NCBI RefSeq assembly: GCF_006345805.1
Contig: NW_021828026.1
Location: forward strand, 1-9,051
Source: Octopus sinensis
Taxonomy: Eukaryota
Length of the DNA: 9,051 nucleotides
Reading direction: 5' to 3'
In this document: in pieces, positions 1-9,051 of the stretch
Layout of the letters: each line of letters starts with the position of its first letter
Numbering within the stretch: the stretch's first letter is position 1
Program-made: the position numbers and the translations under genes
Notes under the pieces: model-generated
Databases searched by the model: none
Told to the model about the DNA's origin: nothing
Seen by the model: only the letters and a program-made list of their open reading frames with translations

Positions 1-4
1 CACA

Positions 5-208
5 CACGCCGGGCGAAATGCGTAGCCGTATTTCGTCTGCCGTTACGTTTTCTGAGTTCAAATTCCGCCGAGGTCGACTTTGCCTTTCATCCTTTCGGGG
101 TCGATTAAATAAGTACCAGTTACGCACTGGGTCGATATAATCGACTTAATCCGTTTGTCTGTTCTTGTTTATCCCCTCTATGTTTAGCCCCTAGTGGGTA
201 GTAAAGAA

Positions 209-210
<2 letters not shown>
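5..210 (+). mobile_element. tRNA-derived SINE, family A, tail type 1; first ~25 nt of the head missing
   Basis: B-box-like GAGTTCAAATTCC at 54-66; central block GCCTTTCATCCTTTCGGGGTCGAT..AAGTACCAG; tail ending GTGGGTAGTAAAGAAAT. Colinear with the reverse complement of 2121-2354, 3106-3519 and 8169-8397. The central block resembles the Meta/MESC-type SINE domain (from memory, unverified). Confidence 0.92.
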
Positions 211-211
<1 letters not shown>

Positions 212-290
<79 letters not shown>

Positions 291-311
291 ATAAATACAT
301 ATATGATATAT
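212..311. repeat. (TA)n microsatellite
   Basis: Pure TA run 212-275, degenerate to ~311, directly after the SINE tail. Confidence 0.99.
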
Positions 312-337
312 GTAAAACCACACAGACATATATAGTC

Positions 338-370
338 AGAGAGGGAAAGACAGAAAGAGAGAAAGAGAGG

Positions 371-403
<33 letters not shown>
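338..403. repeat. (GA)n microsatellite
   Basis: Imperfect AG/GA run. Confidence 0.97.
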
Positions 404-631
404 TCGTAAACTTCTTTTAACTCCTCTTAAAATTTTTCAAAACGATAATTGTATTTTTGTGTATAATTAGTTAACCGCATTGTATAATTCAGAAATATTG
501 CCGCTTCTACGTTTCTAGGACTTCATATATTGCTTCTCCAGTCTATACAACCGCAGTATTTTTTCCATTAGTGACATTTCGTACGTTCTTTTCTAAATGA
601 GATATTATACATGTGTGTGCGAGATATAGAG

Positions 632-775
632 AATACCAAACGAGATCCCTATGGATACCGTATTTATTACAACGAGTGGCTGGTAAACGTATCTAACTCG
701 CTTTCGCTCGTCAGATACGTTTACAAGCCACGAGTTGTAATAAATACGGTATCCATAGGGAATGAGTTTGGTATT
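632..775. repeat. Long imperfect inverted repeat: 66-bp arms, 12-nt centre
   Basis: 632-697 is the reverse complement of 710-775 at 58/66 positions. The centre TCGCTTTCGCTC (698-709) can fold further: g700-c707, c701-g706. Confidence 0.98.
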
Positions 776-872
776 TTATTTATTACACACGAATAAACGA
801 CCTTATTTTATTAACCCAATAACTAAATTCTTCACATTTAGTTGTAACTTATGAATGACAAAAGTAGTGCCA

Positions 873-1027
873 TCACCGTGACCTCGGGTCATCACCATGA
901 ATTGACCAATCAGAAGCAGCGCTGTCACCGTGACCTCGGGTCATCACCATGGATTGACCAATCAGAAGCAGCGCTGTCACCGTGACCTCGGGTCATCACC
1001 ATGGATTGACCAATCAGAAGCAGCGCT
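873..1027. repeat. 52-bp minisatellite, 3 copies
   Basis: Unit TCACCGTGACCTCGGGTCATCACCATGGATTGACCAATCAGAAGCAGCGCTG starts at 873, 925 and 977. One substitution (a900 vs g952); the last copy is 1 nt short. Confidence 0.99.
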
Positions 1028-1142
1028 CGCAGTATCTGACATATGTTAGATACCAAAAATATCTCAAAGTGTTCTCAGTCACATGTGTGTAATAATGTCT
1101 TAAGTTATTCGTATACCTCATCCAGGGCACTATTATTTTCAT

Positions 1143-1199
1143 GGCAGTGCCCCAGCATGGCCACAGTCTAATGACTGAAATAAATAAAAGATAAAAGAA
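1143..1199 (+). mobile_element. Isolated CR1-type 3' tail of a SINE or LINE
   Basis: GTGCCCCAGCATGGCC (1147-1162) is identical to the LINE 3' UTR at 5362-5377 and is followed by an A-rich (AAAAGAT)-like tail. Confidence 0.78.
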
Positions 1200-1241
1200 T
1201 ATAATTTTACGCTCTCGCTAGGAAAATTTCCATTTGCCGCT

Positions 1242-1312
1242 ACGGTTAGGGTTATGGTTAAGTTTTATGTTTAGTGTTTACGGTTTGCGGTTATGGCTTA
1301 CGGTTTACGATT
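1242..1312. repeat. Degenerate 6-mer array resembling (TTAGGG)n
   Basis: Units ACGGTT, AGGGTT, ATGGTT, AAGTTT etc.; only one perfect TTAGGG (1246-1251). Confidence 0.6.
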
Positions 1313-1698
1313 CTGAAGCACTCCGTCGATTACGACGACGAGGGTTCTGGTTGATCCGAATCAACGGAACAGCCTGCTCGTGAAATTAACGTGTAAGTGG
1401 CTGAGCACTCCACAGACACGTGTACCCTTAACGTAGTTCTCGGGGATATTCAGCGTGACACAGAGAGTGACAAGGCCGGCCCTTTGAAATACAGGTACAA
1501 CAGAAACAGGAAGTAAGAGTGAGAGAAAGTTGTGGTGAAAGAGTACAGCAGGGATCACCACCATCCCCTGCCTGAGCCTCGTGGAGCTTTAGGTGTTTTC
1601 GCTCAATAAACACTCACAACGCTCGGTCTGGGAATCGAAACCGCGATCTTATGACCGCGAGTCCGCTGCCCTAACCACTGGGCCATTGCGCCTCCACA
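1313..1698 (-). mobile_element. Full-length tRNA-derived SINE, family C (386 bp), with 13-bp TSD
   Basis: A-box TGGCCCAGTGG (1685-1675); B-box GTTTCGATTCC (1641-1631); exact direct repeats ACGGTTTACGATT at 1300-1312 and 1699-1711. The head looks tRNA-Arg-like, as in the octopus OR-type SINEs (recollection). Confidence 0.92.
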
Positions 1699-1854
1699 AC
1701 GGTTTACGATTATAGCTATTCGGAAAGGAGAAATACTCGTTAAATTTCATCATATGAACTTTTTAAGTTTCTTTCATACGGTCGTAATTGCCAATACCTA
1801 ACTGAAATTTCTAAATGACGCGTTAAGTGATAAGGTATATTGTGCAATGCATAT

Positions 1855-2020
1855 ATTTTCATCATTTAATTGTTTCAGTCATTGGAAAGTTTTGTCGATC
1901 AAATAGACTTAACAGGTACTAAGGTCGATCCGTCCGACTTAAATTCATCACAGCGGTAATCCAGCATGGCCGCTATCTAACAAGTGAAAGAATTAAAAGA
2001 TTAAAGCTAAAAGATGAAAG
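1855..2020. mobile_element. Two degenerate CR1-tailed SINE 3' ends in divergent (fold-back) orientation
   Basis: Minus arm TTTCAGTCATT (1873-1883) is the reverse complement of AATGACTGAAA (1170-1180). The plus arm has CAGCGGT (1951-1957) and CCAGCATGGCCGC (1961-1973), both also in the LINE 3' UTR. Confidence 0.58.
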
Positions 2021-2120
2021 CTATGCCACAGAATCTTGCAAAACTAGACACCAATCGGGACAGCAATATCTAAGCGTTATCTATGCTTAAGGTTATCTAT
2101 GAAGAAAAATAGCCAATATC

Positions 2121-2354
2121 TATTTCTTTACTACCCACAAGGGGCTAAACACAGAGAGGACAAACAAGGACAGACAAACGGATTAAGCCGATTTTATCGA
2201 CCCCAGTGCGTAACTGGTACTTATTTAATCGACCCCGAAAGGATGAAAGCCAAAGTCGACCTCGGCGGAATTTGAACTCAGAACATAGCGGCAGACGAAA
2301 TACCTCTAAGCATTTCGCCCGGCGGGCTAACGATTCTGCCAAGCTCGCCGCCCT
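2121..2354 (-). mobile_element. Full-length family A SINE, tail type 1, with 16-bp TSD
   Basis: Reverse complement starts GGCGGCGAGC. Flanks AAAAATAGCCAATATC (2105-2120) and AAAAACAACCAATATC (2355-2370) are 14/16 identical. Confidence 0.95.
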
Positions 2355-2628
2355 AAAAACAACCAATATCAATGTATGTGTTCTCTAAAAACCATGAATC
2401 CACATATACTTTTCACTTTACTTGACTGAAGGACAAATCAGAATAGCGACACTAAGATATGAAATTTACAAACAAGCACAACAAATGTGTATTCCCATCA
2501 TCGGCTGCCAAACGGATAACATTGTGCTTTTGACACCTCTTCTGTCCCATCCCATCCAGCAATGTGAACAGTGTTGAAAACATAAACGCTGCCTGAGAAT
2601 CAATAGTAATCAGTAAGGCTGAAACATT

Positions 2629-2672
2629 ACACACAGACACACACACACACACATACACACGTACACATACAT
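2629..2672. repeat. (CA)n microsatellite
   Basis: Imperfect CA run. Confidence 0.95.
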
Positions 2673-2700
2673 GCATATTTATAGATATTTATAGACATAT

Positions 2701-2907
2701 ATCCCTTCATTTATAGGCACCAGTCTTGAAATTTTAGGTTCTGGTACTAGTTAAAGACAGTAACCCCAGTGCTTGAGTGGTTCTATATTTTATTCGACCT
2801 GAAAGGATGACAGACAGAGATAACCTCAGCAGAATTTGAACTAAAAGCCAAAAGAAAGAATGTTGCTAAGCATTTTGTCTGGTGTGCAACGATTGTACCA
2901 GCTCACC
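2701..2907 (-). mobile_element. Old, degenerate family A SINE, tail type 2
   Basis: Recognisable blocks ACCCCAGTGC, GAAAGGATGA, AGAATTTGAACT, GCTAAGCATTT, CCAGCTCACC. The reverse complement of the tail contains GTGCCTATA, as at 8662-8670. Confidence 0.68.
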
Positions 2908-3105
2908 TATATATATATTTCAGGTCACTCCTTACTGCTGCTCGTTGCATATAACGCAGTATAACCTGTCACATGGTCGGGTTGTCAACAACTAAACGGA
3001 AAAACGTACGAATAAAAAAGCAAGACCCGTTAAAGAGCAGAGGAAAGACTGTGTGTCAACGGCCATCCGAATGAAGTGTGCTGTTCATCAGTCTCGTGAC
3101 ATACC

Positions 3106-3519
3106 TATTTCTTTATTACCCACAAGGGGCTAAACACAGAGGGAACAAACAAGGACAGACATAGGTATTAAGTCGATTACATCGACCCCAGTTCGTAACT
3201 GGTACTTAATTTATCGACCCCGAAAGGATGAAAGGCAAAGTCGACCTCGGCGGAATTTGAACTCACAACGTAACGCAGACGAAATACCTATTTCTTTATT
3301 ACCCACAAGGGGCTAAACATAGAGGGGACAAACAAGGACAGACATAGGTATTGAGTCGATTACATCGACCTCAGTGCGTAACTGGTACTTAATTTATCGA
3401 CCCCGAAAGGATGAAAGGCAAAGTCGACCTCGGCGGAATTTGAACTCACAACGTAATGATAGACGAAGTACGGCTACGCATTTCGCCCGGCGTGCTAACG
3501 TTTCTGCCAGCTCGCCGCC
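3106..3519 (-). mobile_element. Family A SINE dimer (one full plus one 5'-truncated copy) inside a single 14-bp TSD
   Basis: Partial unit 3106-3288 and full unit 3289-3519; exact direct repeats CTCGTGACATACCT at 3093-3106 and 3519-3532. Confidence 0.95.
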
Positions 3520-3734
3520 TCGTGACATACCTGCATCGACTATTGTTATCAACAGTGACAAAGTGTGAAAGGACACATACAAATCATTATATTTCTACAG
3601 AAATAAATGTGTGGGCTGTCCAAGAAATTTGCTTACTCCGATTTTTATCAAGCTCATCTTGAAAAGGAAAATAAAAGGGGAGAAAAAGTAAAGTTCTTTG
3701 ACCCTCGTCGAATAGATGAGGGTCCATCAAAAAT

Positions 3735-4056
3735 ACATAATACATACATGCATACAGATAGGTCGATAGATAGATAGATAGATAAATAGATTGATAGCTA
3801 GATAGATAAAGGGGTAGATAGACAAATAGAAAGATATGTATACATATATACACACATACATACATACATATAAGTATGTACTTTATATATATATATATAC
3901 ATATATAGATAGATAAATGCATACATACATACACACACATACATACATACATACATACATACATACATACATACATACATACGTACGTACATACATACAT
4001 ACATACATACATACATACGTACATACATACATACATACATACATACATACATGCAC
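3735..4056. repeat. Compound (TAGA)n/(TA)n/(TACA)n microsatellite
   Basis: TAGA-rich ~3753-3830; near-pure TACA ~3921-4051. Confidence 0.98.
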
Positions 4057-4165
4057 ATATGGGTTTGTGTATATATAACGATATCTGTTTATGGGCATTT
4101 GTACGCTTGTGTTTGTATCAAGGGGAGAAAAAGAACAAGCTTAGGTTCTTCGCGAATCGGTTTGC

Positions 4166-4264
4166 CACAAGGCTTTGGTCTGCCCGAGGCTATAGTAGAA
4201 GACACATGCCCAAGGTGCCACACAGTGCGACTGAACCCGGAACCATGTGGTTGGTAAGCAAGCT
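4166..4264 (-). mobile_element. CORE-type SINE fragment (partial tRNA head plus CORE-like block)
   Basis: B-box-like GGGTTCAGTCGC (4238-4227), then GCACCTTGGGCATGTGTCTTCTACTATAGCC (4218-4188), which shares ACCTTGGGCA with the MIR CORE domain. A-box and tail are absent. Confidence 0.72.
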
Positions 4265-4267
4265 AGT

Positions 4268-4296
4268 TGTGTATAGACACACACATATATATACAT

Positions 4297-4338
<42 letters not shown>

Positions 4339-4350
4339 GTTGTGTGTGTA

Positions 4351-4382
<32 letters not shown>

Positions 4383-4409
4383 TATGCACGCATATAAATA
4401 TGTGCTTAC

Positions 4410-4500
<91 letters not shown>

Positions 4501-4534
4501 TGCACGCATATAAATATGTGCTTATATATATATA
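4268..4534. repeat. Compound (TA)n(TG)n microsatellite with a duplicated ~116-bp higher-order unit
   Basis: The unique 28-mer TGTATGCACGCATATAAATATGTGCTTA occurs at 4381-4408 and 4497-4524. Confidence 0.97.
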
Positions 4535-4743
4535 ACGGGAAGCTTAATGAAAATAAACAAAAGACGAAGGCAGGTGGAGTAAAAACAAACAATTGTATTA
4601 GTATGGCGCTCAGGAATATAAATAAAACAAGTCTTTTACGTTTCGAGCCTACGCTCTTCAACAGAAAGATGCACAGAAAAGAAACACGGAGAGAAACAAG
4701 GAGAGAAAAAAAATGCGTGCAGAAGCTAGCGATTCAACATGGC
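4535..4743 (-). mobile_element. Penelope-like element fragment (pseudo-LTR-like), flanked by (TA)n
   Basis: Non-microsatellite block bounded by TA runs on both sides, carrying a minimal hammerhead motif of the kind found in Penelope-like pLTRs. No RT or GIY-YIG sequence is present, so the class call rests on the motif. Confidence 0.55.
4632..4669 (-). ncRNA. Minimal type-I hammerhead ribozyme motif with variant core
   Basis: Minus strand: UCUUU-CUGUUGA-A-GAGC(GUAG)GCUC-GAAAC-GUA-AAAGA. Stem I 5 bp, stem II 4 bp closed by G-C, palindromic ACGU stem III, GUA cleavage triplet. Position 6 is U instead of A. Confidence 0.65.
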
Positions 4744-4762
4744 ATATATATATATATATATA

Positions 4763-5342
4763 AGAGAGAAGGAGACACTGATGGTCCTATGGAAAACATT
4801 TGTCCTCAGCCGCTTGGTCTACTGCTCCCAACTTTGGTCACCACACAATATAAAACAAACAGCAGAACTCGAAGCAACTCAGAGAAGCTACACAAAGAAA
4901 ATCGTCTCAATGCAAAATGTCAGCTACTGGGAAAGACTGAAGGTATTAAACCTCTTCTCCCTGGAGCGGAGGCGGGAGAGATATGCAGTGATATACATCT
5001 GGAAATCCTGGAGGTCTTGTCCCAACTTTGACATTCAAAGTTACTCCAACCGCAGAAGGGGCGCCGCTGCGTGGTGCCAAGGATTCCAACATCACCATCA
5101 AAATACAGGTCCAGATACTGCAACAGCTGGGTTTCAGAGGACCACAGCTCTTTAACATCCTCCCTAAATGCCTGAGAGGCTTACATGGTGTGGATGTGGG
5201 TTTCTTTAAAACTAAACTGGATCTCTTCTTGTTGGGAGTCCCAGATGAACCTACCTCACGACAGGAGACTCGGATGCGGGCAGCAGCATCGAACTCCCTT
5301 GTTGATCAAGTGCCACGTATCAGAGGTGGATTCACAAACTAG
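4763..5342 (+). pseudogene. Frameshifted C-terminal part of LINE ORF2 (post-RT region), CR1 clade
   Basis: REKETLMVLWKTFVLSRLVYCSQLWSP..SYWERLKVLNLFSLERRRERYAVIYIWK, then after frame repair ILEGLVPNF..RRCVVPRIP..YCNSLGFRGPQLFNILPKCLR..FKTKLDLFL..RAAASNSLVDQ..TAG (5340-5342). The YCSQLWSP, RLKxLxLFSLERRR and FKxxLDxFL motifs are typical of CR1-group ORF2 ends. Confidence 0.9.
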
Positions 5343-5418
5343 TGTAGCTCATTCAGCGGTGGTGCCCCAGCATGGCCGCGGCCTTCGGGCTAAAACATTT
5401 TTAAGGATTTAAGGATTT
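4763..5418 (+). mobile_element. 5'-truncated CR1-clade LINE (ORF2 C-terminus, 3' UTR and short-repeat tail)
   Basis: ORF2 remnant, a ~55-nt 3' UTR, and tail TTTAAGGATTTAAGGATTT (5400-5418); (TA)n on both sides. Confidence 0.9.
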
Positions 5419-5490
5419 ATATATATATATACATATATTTATTTGTGCGTGTGTATGTGTATGTATATATATATATATGCATGTGTATAT
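5419..5490. repeat. (TA)n/(TG)n microsatellite
   Basis: Seen directly. Confidence 0.93.
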
Positions 5491-5829
5491 CACTATTTTA
5501 TCACCAACACACAATCATAAGAGTGCGTCTGTGTGTGCGAGTCGTTTTTACGCATGACTATACGCAAATGATTCGCTGGATCTATAATTACAAAAGGGTT
5601 ACGTAAAGTGAGTATGATGACGGTGGTTTAGAATCTCGTATACGATTTTAGCGGGAAATATAGCTACGACAGCGATAAGATGCATCATTGAATTATGACG
5701 TCAGCACGGAATATCTACGACAATCTCCAGTAACGCGACGACGACACGAAGAGTAAGCAGCTGCAATGACTGCAGCAAAGCAGGAACAACGCAAAATTTT
5801 ACGCTTTGTTTCTCTCTCACTTTCTCTGT

Positions 5830-6290
5830 CTCTCTCTCTCCCCTCTCTTTCTCCCTCCCTCTATCAACCTAGCTACTTTGTTTTCGCTCTCTCTCTCTCT
5901 CTCTCTCTCTCTCCCCTCTCTTTCTCCCTCCCTCTATCAACCTAGCTACTTTGTTTTCGCTCTCTCTCTCTCTCTCTCCCCTCTCTTTCTCCCTCCCTCT
6001 ATCAACCTAGCTACTTTGTTTTCGCTCTCTCTCTCTCTCTCCCCTCTCTTTCTCCCTCCCTCTATCAACCTAGCTACTTTGTTTTCCTCTCTCTCTCTCT
6101 CTCTCTCCTCCCCTCTCTTTCTCCTCCCTCTATCACACATAGCTACTTTGTTTTCGCTCTCTCTCTCTCTCTCTCTCCCTCTCTCTCTCCCTCCCTCTAT
6201 CAACCTAGCTACTTTGTTTTCACTCTCTCTCTCTCTCTCTCTCTTTCTCTTTCTCTGCCTGTCTCTGTCTCTCTCTCTGTCTCTTTCTCT
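5830..6290. repeat. 63-73-bp minisatellite with embedded variable (CT)n, 6 copies
   Basis: Anchor CTATCAACCTAGCTACTTTGTTTTC starts at 5861, 5934, 5999, 6062, 6130 (variant) and 6197. Confidence 0.97.
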
Positions 6291-6629
6291 CTTTCTATGT
6301 ATATATAGATGTGTGTGTGTATGTGTGTACACACAGACACACACATGCACACACTTGCACACACTTGCATAAAACGTGTAAATACACGAAACAAGCAGGG
6401 AAGAGTGAACGAGGGAGACTGCAACATGACCACTTGACCTTCTAGAAATAGCAACCGAATCACCCTCGATTTCACATCGTTCAGTTTTCTATAACGAATA
6501 GACTTATCAGACGTTGCCGTCCTACAGACTTTTAGAAGGTGGAAGTGGCCATGGATGGAACGCCTTTGCTGATAGTTCTGTTTCATCAAGAATGACCGGG
6601 AGATAGAAGGAACCAAAGAACTCTGCATT

Positions 6630-6860
6630 TTATTATTATTATTATTATTATTTCTTCTTCTTCTTCTTCTTCTTCTTCTTCTTCTTCTTCTTCTTCTTCT
6701 TCTTCTTCTTCTTCTTCTTCTTTTTCTTCTTTTTCTTCTTTTTCTTTTTCTTCTTTTTCTTCTTATTCTTCTTCTTTTTCCTTCTTATTCTGTTTTCTTT
6801 CGCTTATTATTTATTATTTATATATTATTATTATTATCATTATTATTTATTATTATTATT

Positions 6861-6892
<32 letters not shown>

Positions 6893-6893
6893 T
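6630..6893. repeat. Compound (TTA)n/(TTC)n/(TCA)n trinucleotide microsatellite
   Basis: Includes a pure (TTC)23 at 6652-6720. Confidence 0.98.
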
Positions 6894-6896
6894 ATG

Positions 6897-6971
6897 CAGG
6901 TCACTACCTGGATCCAACTGGGAATCCTGGGGTTAGTGGCCCGCGCTCTTAACCACTACGCCATATGCCCG
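6897..6971 (-). mobile_element. tRNA-derived SINE head, family D, running into a trinucleotide tract
   Basis: A-box TGGCGTAGTGG; degenerate B-box AGTTGGATCC; no acceptor-stem pairing; near-identical to 7413-7488. Confidence 0.8.
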
Positions 6972-7022
6972 TATCATAATCATGCGTTGTCGTTGTCATC
7001 ATTATCATCTCATTATCATCAT

Positions 7023-7224
7023 TGGCACAACTGTTTCCGCGTCGGACTAGATGTCTTGAGGCGATTGTTCCATCATTACATTCTGAATTCAAATTTCGCC
7101 GAGGTCGACTCTGCATTTCATCCTTTCGGGTTTCAATGAAAACCGTACTAGCTGAGCACTGGGGTCGATGTAATAGACTTACTCACCTCCCCACAAATTG
7201 CTGGCCTCGTACCAAAATTTGAAA
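7023..7224 (+). mobile_element. Degenerate family A SINE, tail type 2
   Basis: GAATTCAAATTTCGCCGAGGTCGACTCTGCATTTCATCCTTTCGGG..GCACTGGGGTCGATGTAATAGAC aligns to family A; after the core the tail differs from type 1. Confidence 0.8.
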
Positions 7225-7311
7225 GACGGCATGCACAGCTCTCTCACTCAATAATACAAATAATCCTAATTATTATTAGTATTCTTGAGTGAGAGAGCAG
7301 TGCATGCCGTC
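7225..7311. repeat. Inverted repeat, 33-bp arms, 21-nt spacer
   Basis: 7225-7257 vs 7279-7311: 31/33 complementary (mismatches 7237/7299 and 7252/7284). Confidence 0.97.
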
Positions 7312-7327
7312 AAAGTGACACTGGGGG

Positions 7328-7337
7328 ATTATTATTA

Positions 7338-7412
<75 letters not shown>
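7328..7412. repeat. (TTA)n microsatellite
   Basis: Near-pure TTA run at the 3' side of the family D head. Confidence 0.99.
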
Positions 7413-7416
<4 letters not shown>

Positions 7417-7488
7417 TCACTGCCTGGAATCGAACTGGGAATCTTGAGGTTAGTAGCCCGCGCTCTTAACCACTACGCCATATGCCCG
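7413..7488 (-). mobile_element. tRNA-derived SINE head, family D, with (AAT)n tract
   Basis: CGGGCATATGGCGTAGTGGTTAAGAGCGCGGGCTACTAACCTCAAGATTCCCAGTTCGATTCCAGGCAGTGACCTG: clear A-box and B-box GTTCGATTCC. Confidence 0.85.
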
Positions 7489-7891
7489 TATCATAATCAT
7501 CGTTGATTATGGTACGAAGCCCAATATACCCATCATGACCACTCGCTGATGAGGGTACACCAGGCACATGCAACATAACATTATATGCGCGATATGGTGA
7601 TTTTTGATCAAGATAAACAGCGCATGACATTGCAGGTGGGGCCCCGTTAAAATTGTCTTCAGGTCGAGTAGCTAACCCTGCTGAAAAGGTTCTTGAAGAA
7701 GAGTTGTTAAAGGATGACGAATGAAACACCCATGTTTCCCAGAAGTGAATTATCCAAACCCCCCAAAATACCCCTCAACACATGGCCATCATGTTCCCTC
7801 ACTGGTGATCAGAGATGCACATATCGTCAGCCACCAAGGGAGATGCTCAACTGGTGAGAGTCAAACAACTGACAAGATAATCTGTGGTATT

Positions 7892-8140
7892 TGAACTCGC
7901 GATCGTGAGGACGTGGTTTCAATTCCTAGACCGGATGGTGCATTGTGTTCTTGAGCAAGACACTTCATCTCACGTTACTCTGCGATCACTGCGACACCTG
8001 ACGCGTGGCACACCGTGCACCTGTTCAGGCAACGTCGATTATTTGATGGAGGAGTATGCTAATGTACGACACACATATTCGATCTCTTTAAACAAACCAT
8101 TTGTGCAGGTCGTTCAACAAAAACCGAATACTCATATTCT
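7892..8140 (+). mobile_element. 5'-truncated CORE-like SINE whose head is related to family C; 3' boundary uncertain
   Basis: GAACTCGCGATCGTGAGGACGTGGTTTCAATTCCTAGACCG aligns with the family C head GGACTCGCGGTCATAAGATCGCGGTTTCGATTCCCAGACCG; CORE-like TGTGTTCTTGAGCAAGACACTT at 7944-7965. Confidence 0.62.
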
Positions 8141-8168
8141 AGGCGCAATCCTACTGTCAGTCATGACC

Positions 8169-8397
8169 TATTTCTTTATTACCCACAAGGGGCTAAACAT
8201 AGAGGAGACAAACAAGGACAGACATAGGTATTAAGTCGATTACATCGACCCCAGTGCGTAACTGGTACTTAATTTATCGACCCCGAAAGGATGAAAGGCA
8301 AAGTCGACCTCAGCGGAATTTGAACTCACAACGTTGCGCCAGACGAAATACCGCTAAGCAATCCGCCCGGCGTGCTCACGTTTTTGCCAGCTCGCCG
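8169..8397 (-). mobile_element. Near full-length family A SINE, tail type 1
   Basis: High identity to 3289-3519; shares the CATAGGTATT and CACAACG subfamily variants. Confidence 0.95.
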
Positions 8398-8463
8398 AAG
8401 GGAGTCTCATGTTGTTGTTGTTATTGTTCTCATCGTCGTTGTTGTTGTTGCTATTGTTATTAA

Positions 8464-8688
8464 GGCGGCGAGCTGGCAGAATCACTAGCGCGTCTGAAGA
8501 AATGCTTAGGGGGTGTTTCGTCTGTCGCTACGTTCTGAGTTCAAATGCCGCTGAGGTCAACTTTACATTTCATCTTTCGGGCTCGACAAATTATTAAGTA
8601 CCAGTTGCGTACTGGAGTCGATGAGGTCGATTGTTCCTCTCCCCAGAAACATCCACACCATGTGCCTATAGTAGAAATGATTATCATT
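8464..8688 (+). mobile_element. Full-length family A SINE, tail type 2
   Basis: Starts GGCGGCGAGCTGGCAGAATC; B-box GAGTTCAAATGCC (8537-8549); ends GTGCCTATAGTAGAAATGATTATCATT. Confidence 0.88.
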
Positions 8689-8699
8689 AGTATTTTTGT

Positions 8700-8884
8700 T
8701 GTGGTGCGGGCAAGTGGATTATAGCAGTTATTATCATTATAATCATCATCAGTATCCTCCTCTTCCTCCTCCTCGTCATCATCCTTATCATTAGCAATTG
8801 CAGCAGCAGCAGCAGCAGTAATAGTAGTAGTAGTAACAGCAGTAGTAGCAATAGTAGTAGTAGCTGTAGCAACAGCAGCAGCAA

Positions 8885-8959
<75 letters not shown>

Positions 8960-9051
8960 CATTGATTATATTAATATTATGTTGATTATTAGAGTTGTAG
9001 TGATGATGGTACTGATAATGATGATGAGGACGAAGTTGTTGTTGATGATGA
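8700..9051. repeat. Compound trinucleotide microsatellite (ATC, CCT, GCA, GTA, GAT, GTT)
   Basis: Seen directly; GCA/GTA block ~8799-8957. Confidence 0.97.

Follow-up and report, generated by a model that had tools for sequence, protein, structure and literature searches.

Motifs shared by a large hairpin and a neighbouring tandem-repeat unit in Octopus sinensis: a possible non-autonomous Helentron-type element

Architecture of the region

The window, that is, the whole stretch of 9,051 nucleotides of Octopus sinensis DNA analysed here (contig NW_021828026.1, positions 1 to 9,051), is repeat-dense animal DNA with SINE copies, a LINE tail and many microsatellites. Near its left end, positions 632-1095 contain a large hairpin (module 1) and a neighbouring unit that is bounded by 11-bp inverted repeats and has a tandem array inside it (module 2). 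The features are listed below in order of position.

632-775 (144 nt), no strand assigned: large hairpin with arms at 632-697 and 710-775, 66 nt each, of which 58 of 66 positions are paired; loop at 698-709 (12 nt)
661-671, plus strand: first copy of the TATTTATTACA motif, inside the left arm of the hairpin
689-718, plus strand: site 1, the apex of the big hairpin, made up of GTATCTAAC (689-697), the 12-nt spacer TCGCTTTCGCTC (698-709) and GTCAGATAC (710-718)
736-746, minus strand: second copy of the TATTTATTACA motif, inside the right arm of the hairpin
777-787, plus strand: third copy of the TATTTATTACA motif, starting one base past the last paired position of the hairpin and overlapping the 780-790 repeat
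779-797, plus strand: small stem-loop TTTATT-ACACACG-AATAAA with a weak, all-A/T stem of 6 bp whose 5' side lies within the left repeat (from a fold of 776-860)
780-790, plus strand: left inverted repeat TTATTACACAC, 11 bp, starting 4 nt after the hairpin
821-843, plus strand: stem-loop AACTAAAT-TCTTCAC-ATTTAGTT with an 8-bp stem, 30 nt inside the left repeat
859-1027, plus strand: tandem array of a 52-bp unit, 3.0-3.2 copies, with 99% identity over 873-1027 and a degenerate stretch in the first 14 nt
1032-1053, plus strand: site 2, a 22-bp palindrome made up of GTATCTGAC (1032-1040), ATAT (1041-1044) and GTTAGATAC (1045-1053)
1050-1057, plus strand: third copy of ATACCAAA, overlapping the right arm of site 2
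1085-1095, minus strand: right inverted repeat GTGTGTAATAA, complementary to 780-790 at 11 of 11 positions and lying 31 nt beyond site 2

The hairpin folds with -57 kcal/mol on either strand, and weaker pairing around it reaches 617-790 (81-nt arms, 83%). For the wider stretch 600-1110, the fold lies at z = -10 relative to shuffled sequences. Each arm has the same layout, with TATTTATTACA followed by 17 nt and then by a 9-mer. Inside module 2, the stem-loop at 821-843 mirrors the position of site 2, since one lies 30 nt inside the left repeat and the other 31 nt inside the right. The architecture of 632-1095 is real, non-random and fairly elaborate.

The mismatches of the hairpin are clustered, with a 4-nt block at 642-645/762-765 (GAGA versus ATGA) and a 2-nt block at 674-675/732-733; in the latter, ACGAGT is found in both arms on one and the same strand. 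This clustering might go back to small inversions at these places or to an ancient nested insertion. The piggyBac-like CCCTA...TAGGG ends found inside the hairpin were rejected, as they have no TTAA flank.

Every 52-bp unit of the array contains a GTCAC-C-GTGAC palindrome, an everted TGACC-TCG-GGTCA pair and a CCAATCAG box. Together, they make up three clusters of transcription-factor-like sites at a regular spacing of 52 bp (some five turns of the helix), which we take to resemble NF-Y and nuclear-receptor half-sites.

Such features raise the question of whether the region is not mobile at present and instead persists, or has a function, where it stands, as a local structure that may descend from an old transposon. 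Small RNAs could then derive from the hairpin, the CCAAT box and TGACC/GGTCA palindromes of the 52-bp repeats could together serve transcription factors as a cluster of sites, and the 9-mers could bind a host protein. The CCAATCAG box and nested palindromes of the repeat unit are in keeping with this, and so are the microRNA-like Rfam matches of the hairpin, which are weak and sub-threshold (664-743 scores 26.8 bits against a gathering score of 84 bits). The explanation would also accommodate the single copy seen and the lack of a duplication or of defined termini, and the conservation of motifs only, described below, fits any sequence-specific binder. Against it, no Rfam family reaches its gathering score, no gene or exon lies near the region within the window, and the surroundings, dense in SINE and LINE fragments and microsatellites, are typical of neutral repeat-rich DNA. 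On balance, a purely local structure of this kind seems improbable.

The coding content of the window is in line with the claim of the earlier note that the enzyme acting on the region is not encoded here, as none of its ORFs has a transposase, recombinase or Rep domain. A collection of 5.8 billion proteins yielded no relative of a 61-aa ORF across the hairpin or of a 47-aa open frame spanning the array, and an exact look-up of two ORFs of the window returned no records. No part of 404-1210 has a second copy within the 9-kb window. The tandem unit, the stem of the hairpin and the 22-bp palindrome, used as exact patterns, had 0 matches in metagenomes, prokaryote genomes and viral contigs, and searches of the literature (full text and supplements) for the motifs, the SINE strings and cephalopod Helentrons returned nothing relevant.

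Motifs shared between the two modules

Short motifs recur within the region in both orientations. The first, TTATTACA, is found at 664-671 and 780-787, and its inverse, TGTAATAA, at 736-743 and 1088-1095. All four copies in the window fall within 664-1095, compared with 0.66 expected per window, and a count of four was reached in one of 200 shuffles. The second, ATACCAAA, is found at 633-640 and 1050-1057 and inverted at 767-774; all three copies in the window lie in the region (0.42 expected), and two of them, 633-640 and 767-774, make up the hairpin's base. The outer inverted pairs that had been reported around the two sites are thus all present. However, 664-671/736-743 and 633-640/767-774 are parts of the 66-nt hairpin arms and hence are not independent of the hairpin, and for 780-787/1088-1095 the extent had been under-reported, since the pair is perfect over 11 bp (780-790/1085-1095). 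The independent recurrences are those at 777-787, 1085-1095 and 1050-1057, together with the palindrome of 9+9 positions.

This palindrome is the most distinctive of the shared elements. Read on the minus strand, the arms of the hairpin apex at 689-718 are GTATCTGAC...GTTAGATAC, that is, both 9-mers of 1032-1053. A single G/A difference makes each site an imperfect palindrome, and this difference is common to site 1 and site 2; at site 1, the resulting mismatch is A.C on the plus strand and G.T on the minus strand. Judged by the G/A asymmetry, the two sites have opposite orientations. In the 9-kb window, the pattern GTATCTRAC-N(2-14)-GTYAGATAC matches at sites 1 and 2 only, and it was found in 0 of 200 dinucleotide shuffles. 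When all near-palindromes with 9-bp arms outside (TA)n/(TG)n tracts were considered, the window held two pairs with both arms in common, one being site 1/site 2 and the other sitting in two copies of one SINE, compared with 0 pairs in 100 shuffles. The reuse of the same two 9-mers, G/A asymmetry included, at 1032-1053 and at the hairpin apex was the central observation of the earlier note. It is seen here as described and lies far above chance in shuffles; on recheck, each coordinate and string that had been given proved exact.

With T, A and G standing for the motifs and arrowheads for their direction, the order within 661-746 is T> A> <G <T, and that within 780-1095 is T>, the array, G>, <A and <T, an inverted and expanded version of the former. 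About 35 motif positions are identical between the modules, whereas the spacers measure 17/12/17 nt in one and 244/4/34 nt in the other and differ in sequence. Outside the motifs, alignment of the two modules is no better than that of shuffled sequence. Because the motifs are identical while the spacers differ, the relationship is not that expected from the decay of a neutral duplicate. As judged from the sequence, conservation of motifs only points to cis sites under constraint, or to two members of one family that may need only those sites.

The possibility that module 2 is a diverged full copy of a hairpin arm was considered and rejected as unproven, since local alignments stop at the motifs. 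The local alignment at 777-792 aligns 15 of 16 positions; the remaining comparisons between the modules have p = 0.04-0.4.

The earlier note interpreted the near-palindromes as paired core sites of one tyrosine recombinase, and the region as a non-autonomous Crypton-like element that would be excised as a circle. The region resembles loxP/FRT-type core sites and Cryptons in that identical inverted arms surround a spacer at two sites and in that no target-site duplication is found. The lack of a locally encoded enzyme also agrees with this model, and Cryptons are known in molluscs, for example, in Lottia (PMC3212892). The differences concern arm length, spacer length, spacer identity, relative orientation and terminal repeats. 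Tyrosine recombinases utilise inverted arms of 11-13 bp around a spacer of 6-8 bp (Kojima and Jurka, PMC3212892), whereas the arms are 9 bp here and the spacers 4 and 12 nt. Animal Cryptons, non-autonomous ones included, have no terminal repeats, direct or inverted (PMC3212892); in contrast, this region is built of inverted repeats, including the perfect 11-bp pair.

Both sites are internal rather than terminal, lying 31-57 nt away from any candidate end, and the flanks of site 2 show no complementarity beyond the 9-bp arms. In well-studied systems such as Cre/loxP and FLP/FRT, strand exchange requires matching crossover regions in the partner sites. The spacers here, ATAT (4 nt, site 2) and TCGCTTTCGCTC (12 nt, site 1), have no sequence in common, so that a common crossover region is missing. 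In the same systems, excision requires that the partner sites are in direct orientation, and inverted sites give inversion. Since sites 1 and 2 are mutually inverted, inversion of the intervening DNA would be predicted, and not excision. Every testable feature of the proposed recombinase sites (arm, spacer length, spacer identity, orientation and terminal repeats) thus failed, and we give the tyrosine-recombinase model hardly any credence. The broader part of the claim, a non-autonomous element with cis sites for a trans-acting enzyme, fares better, as the region is non-coding and structured and its motifs are conserved relative to the spacers; it is the assignment to tyrosine recombinases and Cryptons that lacks support.

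Candidate transposon types

Rather than a pair of recombinase sites, the region most probably represents what is left of a non-autonomous DNA transposon of a known kind. The limits 617/632-1095 used below are putative termini, and the mobility of this stretch and the class of its enzyme are likewise presumed. No target-site duplication was detected at nine candidate boundaries with +-3 nt of slack; direct repeats flanking them reach 2-4 nt at best, which is the chance level. Decay offers no obvious excuse for this lack at 632-1095, because a neighbouring SINE (1313-1698) retains a perfect 13-bp duplication, ACGGTTTACGATT, at 1300-1312/1699-1711. A 10-bp direct repeat, ACATGTGTGT (609-618/1081-1090), was tried as a target-site duplication and rejected, as it is of low complexity, is at about the chance level for 1 kb and abuts no inverted repeat. 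The left junction falls between T and T at a T-rich boundary, with TATTTTAT on its outer side and TTATTAC on its inner side.

We tentatively interpret 617/632-1095 as a non-coding, transposon-derived composite whose layout is closest to that of a non-autonomous Helentron (HLE2; HINE/DINE-1-like), at a probability of roughly 35%. It would work most like a HINE, which is not the same as being a proven member of that group. According to this reading, a Rep/helicase (HUH endonuclease) encoded elsewhere would move the region by rolling-circle transposition. On the minus strand, the putative element would begin with a 5' short terminal repeat, TTATTACACAC (1095-1085), and continue with the palindrome with the 9-bp stem (1053-1032), the central satellite-like array of 3.2 x 52 bp, a second small stem-loop and, on the 3' side, the terminal repeat again in inverted form (790-780), directly followed by the stem-loop (775-632). 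The TATTTATTACA-type motifs and the GTATCTRAC palindromes may serve the trans-acting enzyme as cis sites or hairpins for recognition at both ends. Such a role under the Helentron model would explain why the motifs are perfectly conserved and the intervening DNA is not. The big hairpin would be either the element's own 3' stem-loop or an adjacent second, short member of the same family.

Several properties of HLE2 elements have counterparts, or possible counterparts, here. Firstly, HLE2 elements have short inverted repeats of 11-18 nt, and HINEs have subterminal inverted repeats (subTIRs) that are 11-15 bp long; the perfect 11-bp inverted pair at 780-790/1085-1095 falls in both ranges. Secondly, the hallmark of HLE2 is a stem-loop just beyond one repeat, located on the 3' side of the right repeat or, in the case of 'HLE2-reverse', on the 5' side of the left repeat; here the hairpin at 632-775 ends 4 nt outside one repeat, which fits in position and not in size, and no stem-loop lies beyond the other repeat. 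Thirdly, HLE2 elements insert between T and T without duplication, with which the T-rich left junction between T and T and the lack of a target-site duplication would agree if the putative termini are the true ones; the lack of coding capacity is likewise shared with HINEs. Fourthly, oyster HINEs carry short tandem arrays between their end modules, mite HINEs and Drosophila DINE-1 carry central repeats, and a central short tandem array (859-1027) is found here too; in HINEs, such central tandem repeats are frequent and not obligatory. The genomic setting is also of the mollusc type, in which non-autonomous Helentrons (HINE/DINE-1-like) are common. The annotation of Octopus vulgaris reports Helitron-like elements as abundant and recently active, and it lists no Crypton.

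A further, partial likeness concerns the ends. DINE-1 and Cg_HINE have an inverted repeat complementary to the subTIR near the 5' end, within 1-22 bp of it, and this region has extra inverted copies of the repeat motif near one end (661-671, 736-746 and 777-787). The inverted repeat close to the left repeat is only the 6-bp A/T stem TTTATT/AATAAA (779-797), and the longer complementary copies of the motif are 30-64 nt away.

In other respects, the region departs from the known elements. The arms of its stem-loop are 66 nt long, whereas the 3' palindromes of HINEs have 5-10 bp, and a terminal-repeat motif inside the stem-loop is undescribed for HINEs. The 22-bp palindrome lies inside the neighbouring repeat and not after it, so that the canonical order is violated at one end whichever strand is read. 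A second palindrome with the arms of the hairpin apex inside the other end is likewise undescribed for HINEs. The microsatellite module is missing, and the repeat unit is 52 bp compared with about 160 bp in oysters. Finally, the terminal repeat resembles no published Helentron subTIR. The elements used for the HINE comparison were DINE-1 of Drosophila, Cg_HINE and the 'pearl'-type elements of bivalves, and the region itself is known from one copy.

Two related readings were tried and rejected. A Helentron read on the plus strand, with the stem GGGCACT/AGTGCCC at 1124-1151, fails because the right half of this stem is part of the 3' tail fragment of a LINE/SINE; in addition, 1085-1140 does not fold better than shuffled sequences do. 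Canonical Helitrons (HLE1) have 5' TC, a 3' hairpin about 11 nt before CTRR and insertion between A and T. On the plus strand, the 15 nt or so that follow each palindrome hold no CTRR, and neither do those that follow the big hairpin on the minus strand. The one CTGA, 14 nt past site 2 on the minus strand, is part of every 52-bp unit and hence marks no terminus.

A serious rival to the Helentron-type reading, although we consider it somewhat unlikely, is that the region consists of two adjacent or nested cut-and-paste MITEs of one family, namely, a palindromic 144-bp hairpin (632-775) and a 316-bp unit with tandem repeats (780-1095). The transposase would be a DDE enzyme encoded elsewhere, and TATTTATTACA and GTATCTRAC would be its terminal or subterminal binding sites. 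Both parts are non-coding and have MITE-like sizes. As in palindromic DDE MITEs, the roughly 144-bp hairpin is nearly all inverted repeat, and the second unit (about 316 bp) is bounded by perfect 11-bp terminal inverted repeats. The two ends mirror each other in their motifs, as with transposase-binding sites. Sixty-five MITE families and many TIR families have been reported in Octopus vulgaris, and palindromic hairpins are common here, as an unrelated one of 87 bp lies at 7225-7311 in the window. What distinguishes the region from such MITEs is that no target-site duplication is present at the tested boundaries despite the perfect repeats and internal repeats that are 99% identical, and that an internal satellite-like array is atypical for them. 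To our knowledge, a T-rich start such as TTATTAC is unusual among DDE superfamilies. Placing the ends at CACAC/GTGTG, flanked by a TA duplication, would shorten the repeats to just 5 bp. Moreover, MITE-like elements with tandem repeats in molluscs have been reassigned to Helentrons.

It is tempting to speculate about a third type of mobility. In the IS200/IS605-type HUH transposons, such as IS608, subterminal imperfect hairpins are present at the left and right ends. In the region itself, the imperfect palindrome with its G.T/A.C asymmetry may mark both ends of a unit moved by a structure-specific enzyme (a HUH nuclease or another reader of hairpins or cruciforms), in a manner undescribed for eukaryotic elements. 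The arms would be read whatever the loop length (4 versus 12 nt), and the 144-nt hairpin would be the extruded cruciform version of the 22-bp site. As in IS608, the same imperfect hairpin with a conserved mismatch is found at both ends, where one HUH enzyme would read it; unlike here, both IS608 hairpins have the same strand and orientation, and IS608 elements are bacterial. We regard such a new mode of movement as very unlikely.

The recurring motif (661-671, 736-746, 777-787 and 1085-1095) contains TATTAC, the conserved core of the NANTATTAC nonanucleotide that is nicked by the HUH Rep proteins of circular ssDNA viruses. Here, TATTAC lies in stems and not in loops, and position 2 is mismatched to the nonanucleotide; the resemblance is a lead for the HUH idea only.

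The feature worth following is the reuse of one imperfect palindrome at the hairpin apex and near the opposite end. If the Helentron-type reading is true, the region would add a cephalopod case to the rolling-circle passengers with tandem repeats that are known from bivalves and flies. Such passengers seed satellite-like arrays and spread clusters of transcription-factor-like sites, which here comprise the CCAAT box and the TGACC/GGTCA palindromes. Given many copies, the very long stem-loop and the reuse of the palindrome could then show what Rep reads. Should the region turn out to be no more than a pair of MITEs or a relic present once, it would be a matter of routine repeat annotation.

Other repeats in the window

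The SINE at 1313-1698 is on the minus strand, has a tRNA-like head at about 1620-1698 and lies inside a degenerate GGTTTAC-type tandem tract; ARAGORN did not call the tRNA-like part of this SINE. One SINE family (CCTATTTCTTTATTACCCACAAGGGGCTAAAC...) is represented by at least six full or partial copies in both orientations:

1-205, 2128-2350, 3101-3530 (two tandem copies, period 183), 8160-8400 and 8460-8650: copies of the CCTATTTCTTTATTACCCACAAGGGGCTAAAC... SINE family

The 5' end of this SINE contains TTATTACCCAC, one mismatch from TTATTACACAC, a likeness that is taken to be a coincidence.

A frame-shifted 3' portion of a LINE is located at about 4770-5400. The best protein matches of its C-terminal fragment from the reverse-transcriptase region (4772-5152) are only about 50% identical and come from ENA contigs and a crab. 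Two short fragments, 1141-1202 and 1935-2020, have the 3' tail of this LINE in common with it (...CCAGCATGGCC... followed by AAAAG-type repeats), which suggests, from sequence, a LINE/SINE pair using one tail.

The palindromic hairpin at 7225-7311 has 40-nt arms that are 93% complementary and a 7-nt loop, and it has no motif in common with 632-1095. It also gives microRNA-like Rfam matches below threshold, and it looks like a small palindromic MITE. Lastly, 5804-6243 is a minisatellite that has a (CT)n tract as its core, a CT-rich tandem array of a 64/128-bp unit (CTCTATCAACCTAGCTACTTTGTTTTCGCTCTCTC...) in which the 128-bp period is repeated 3.2 times at 88% identity.
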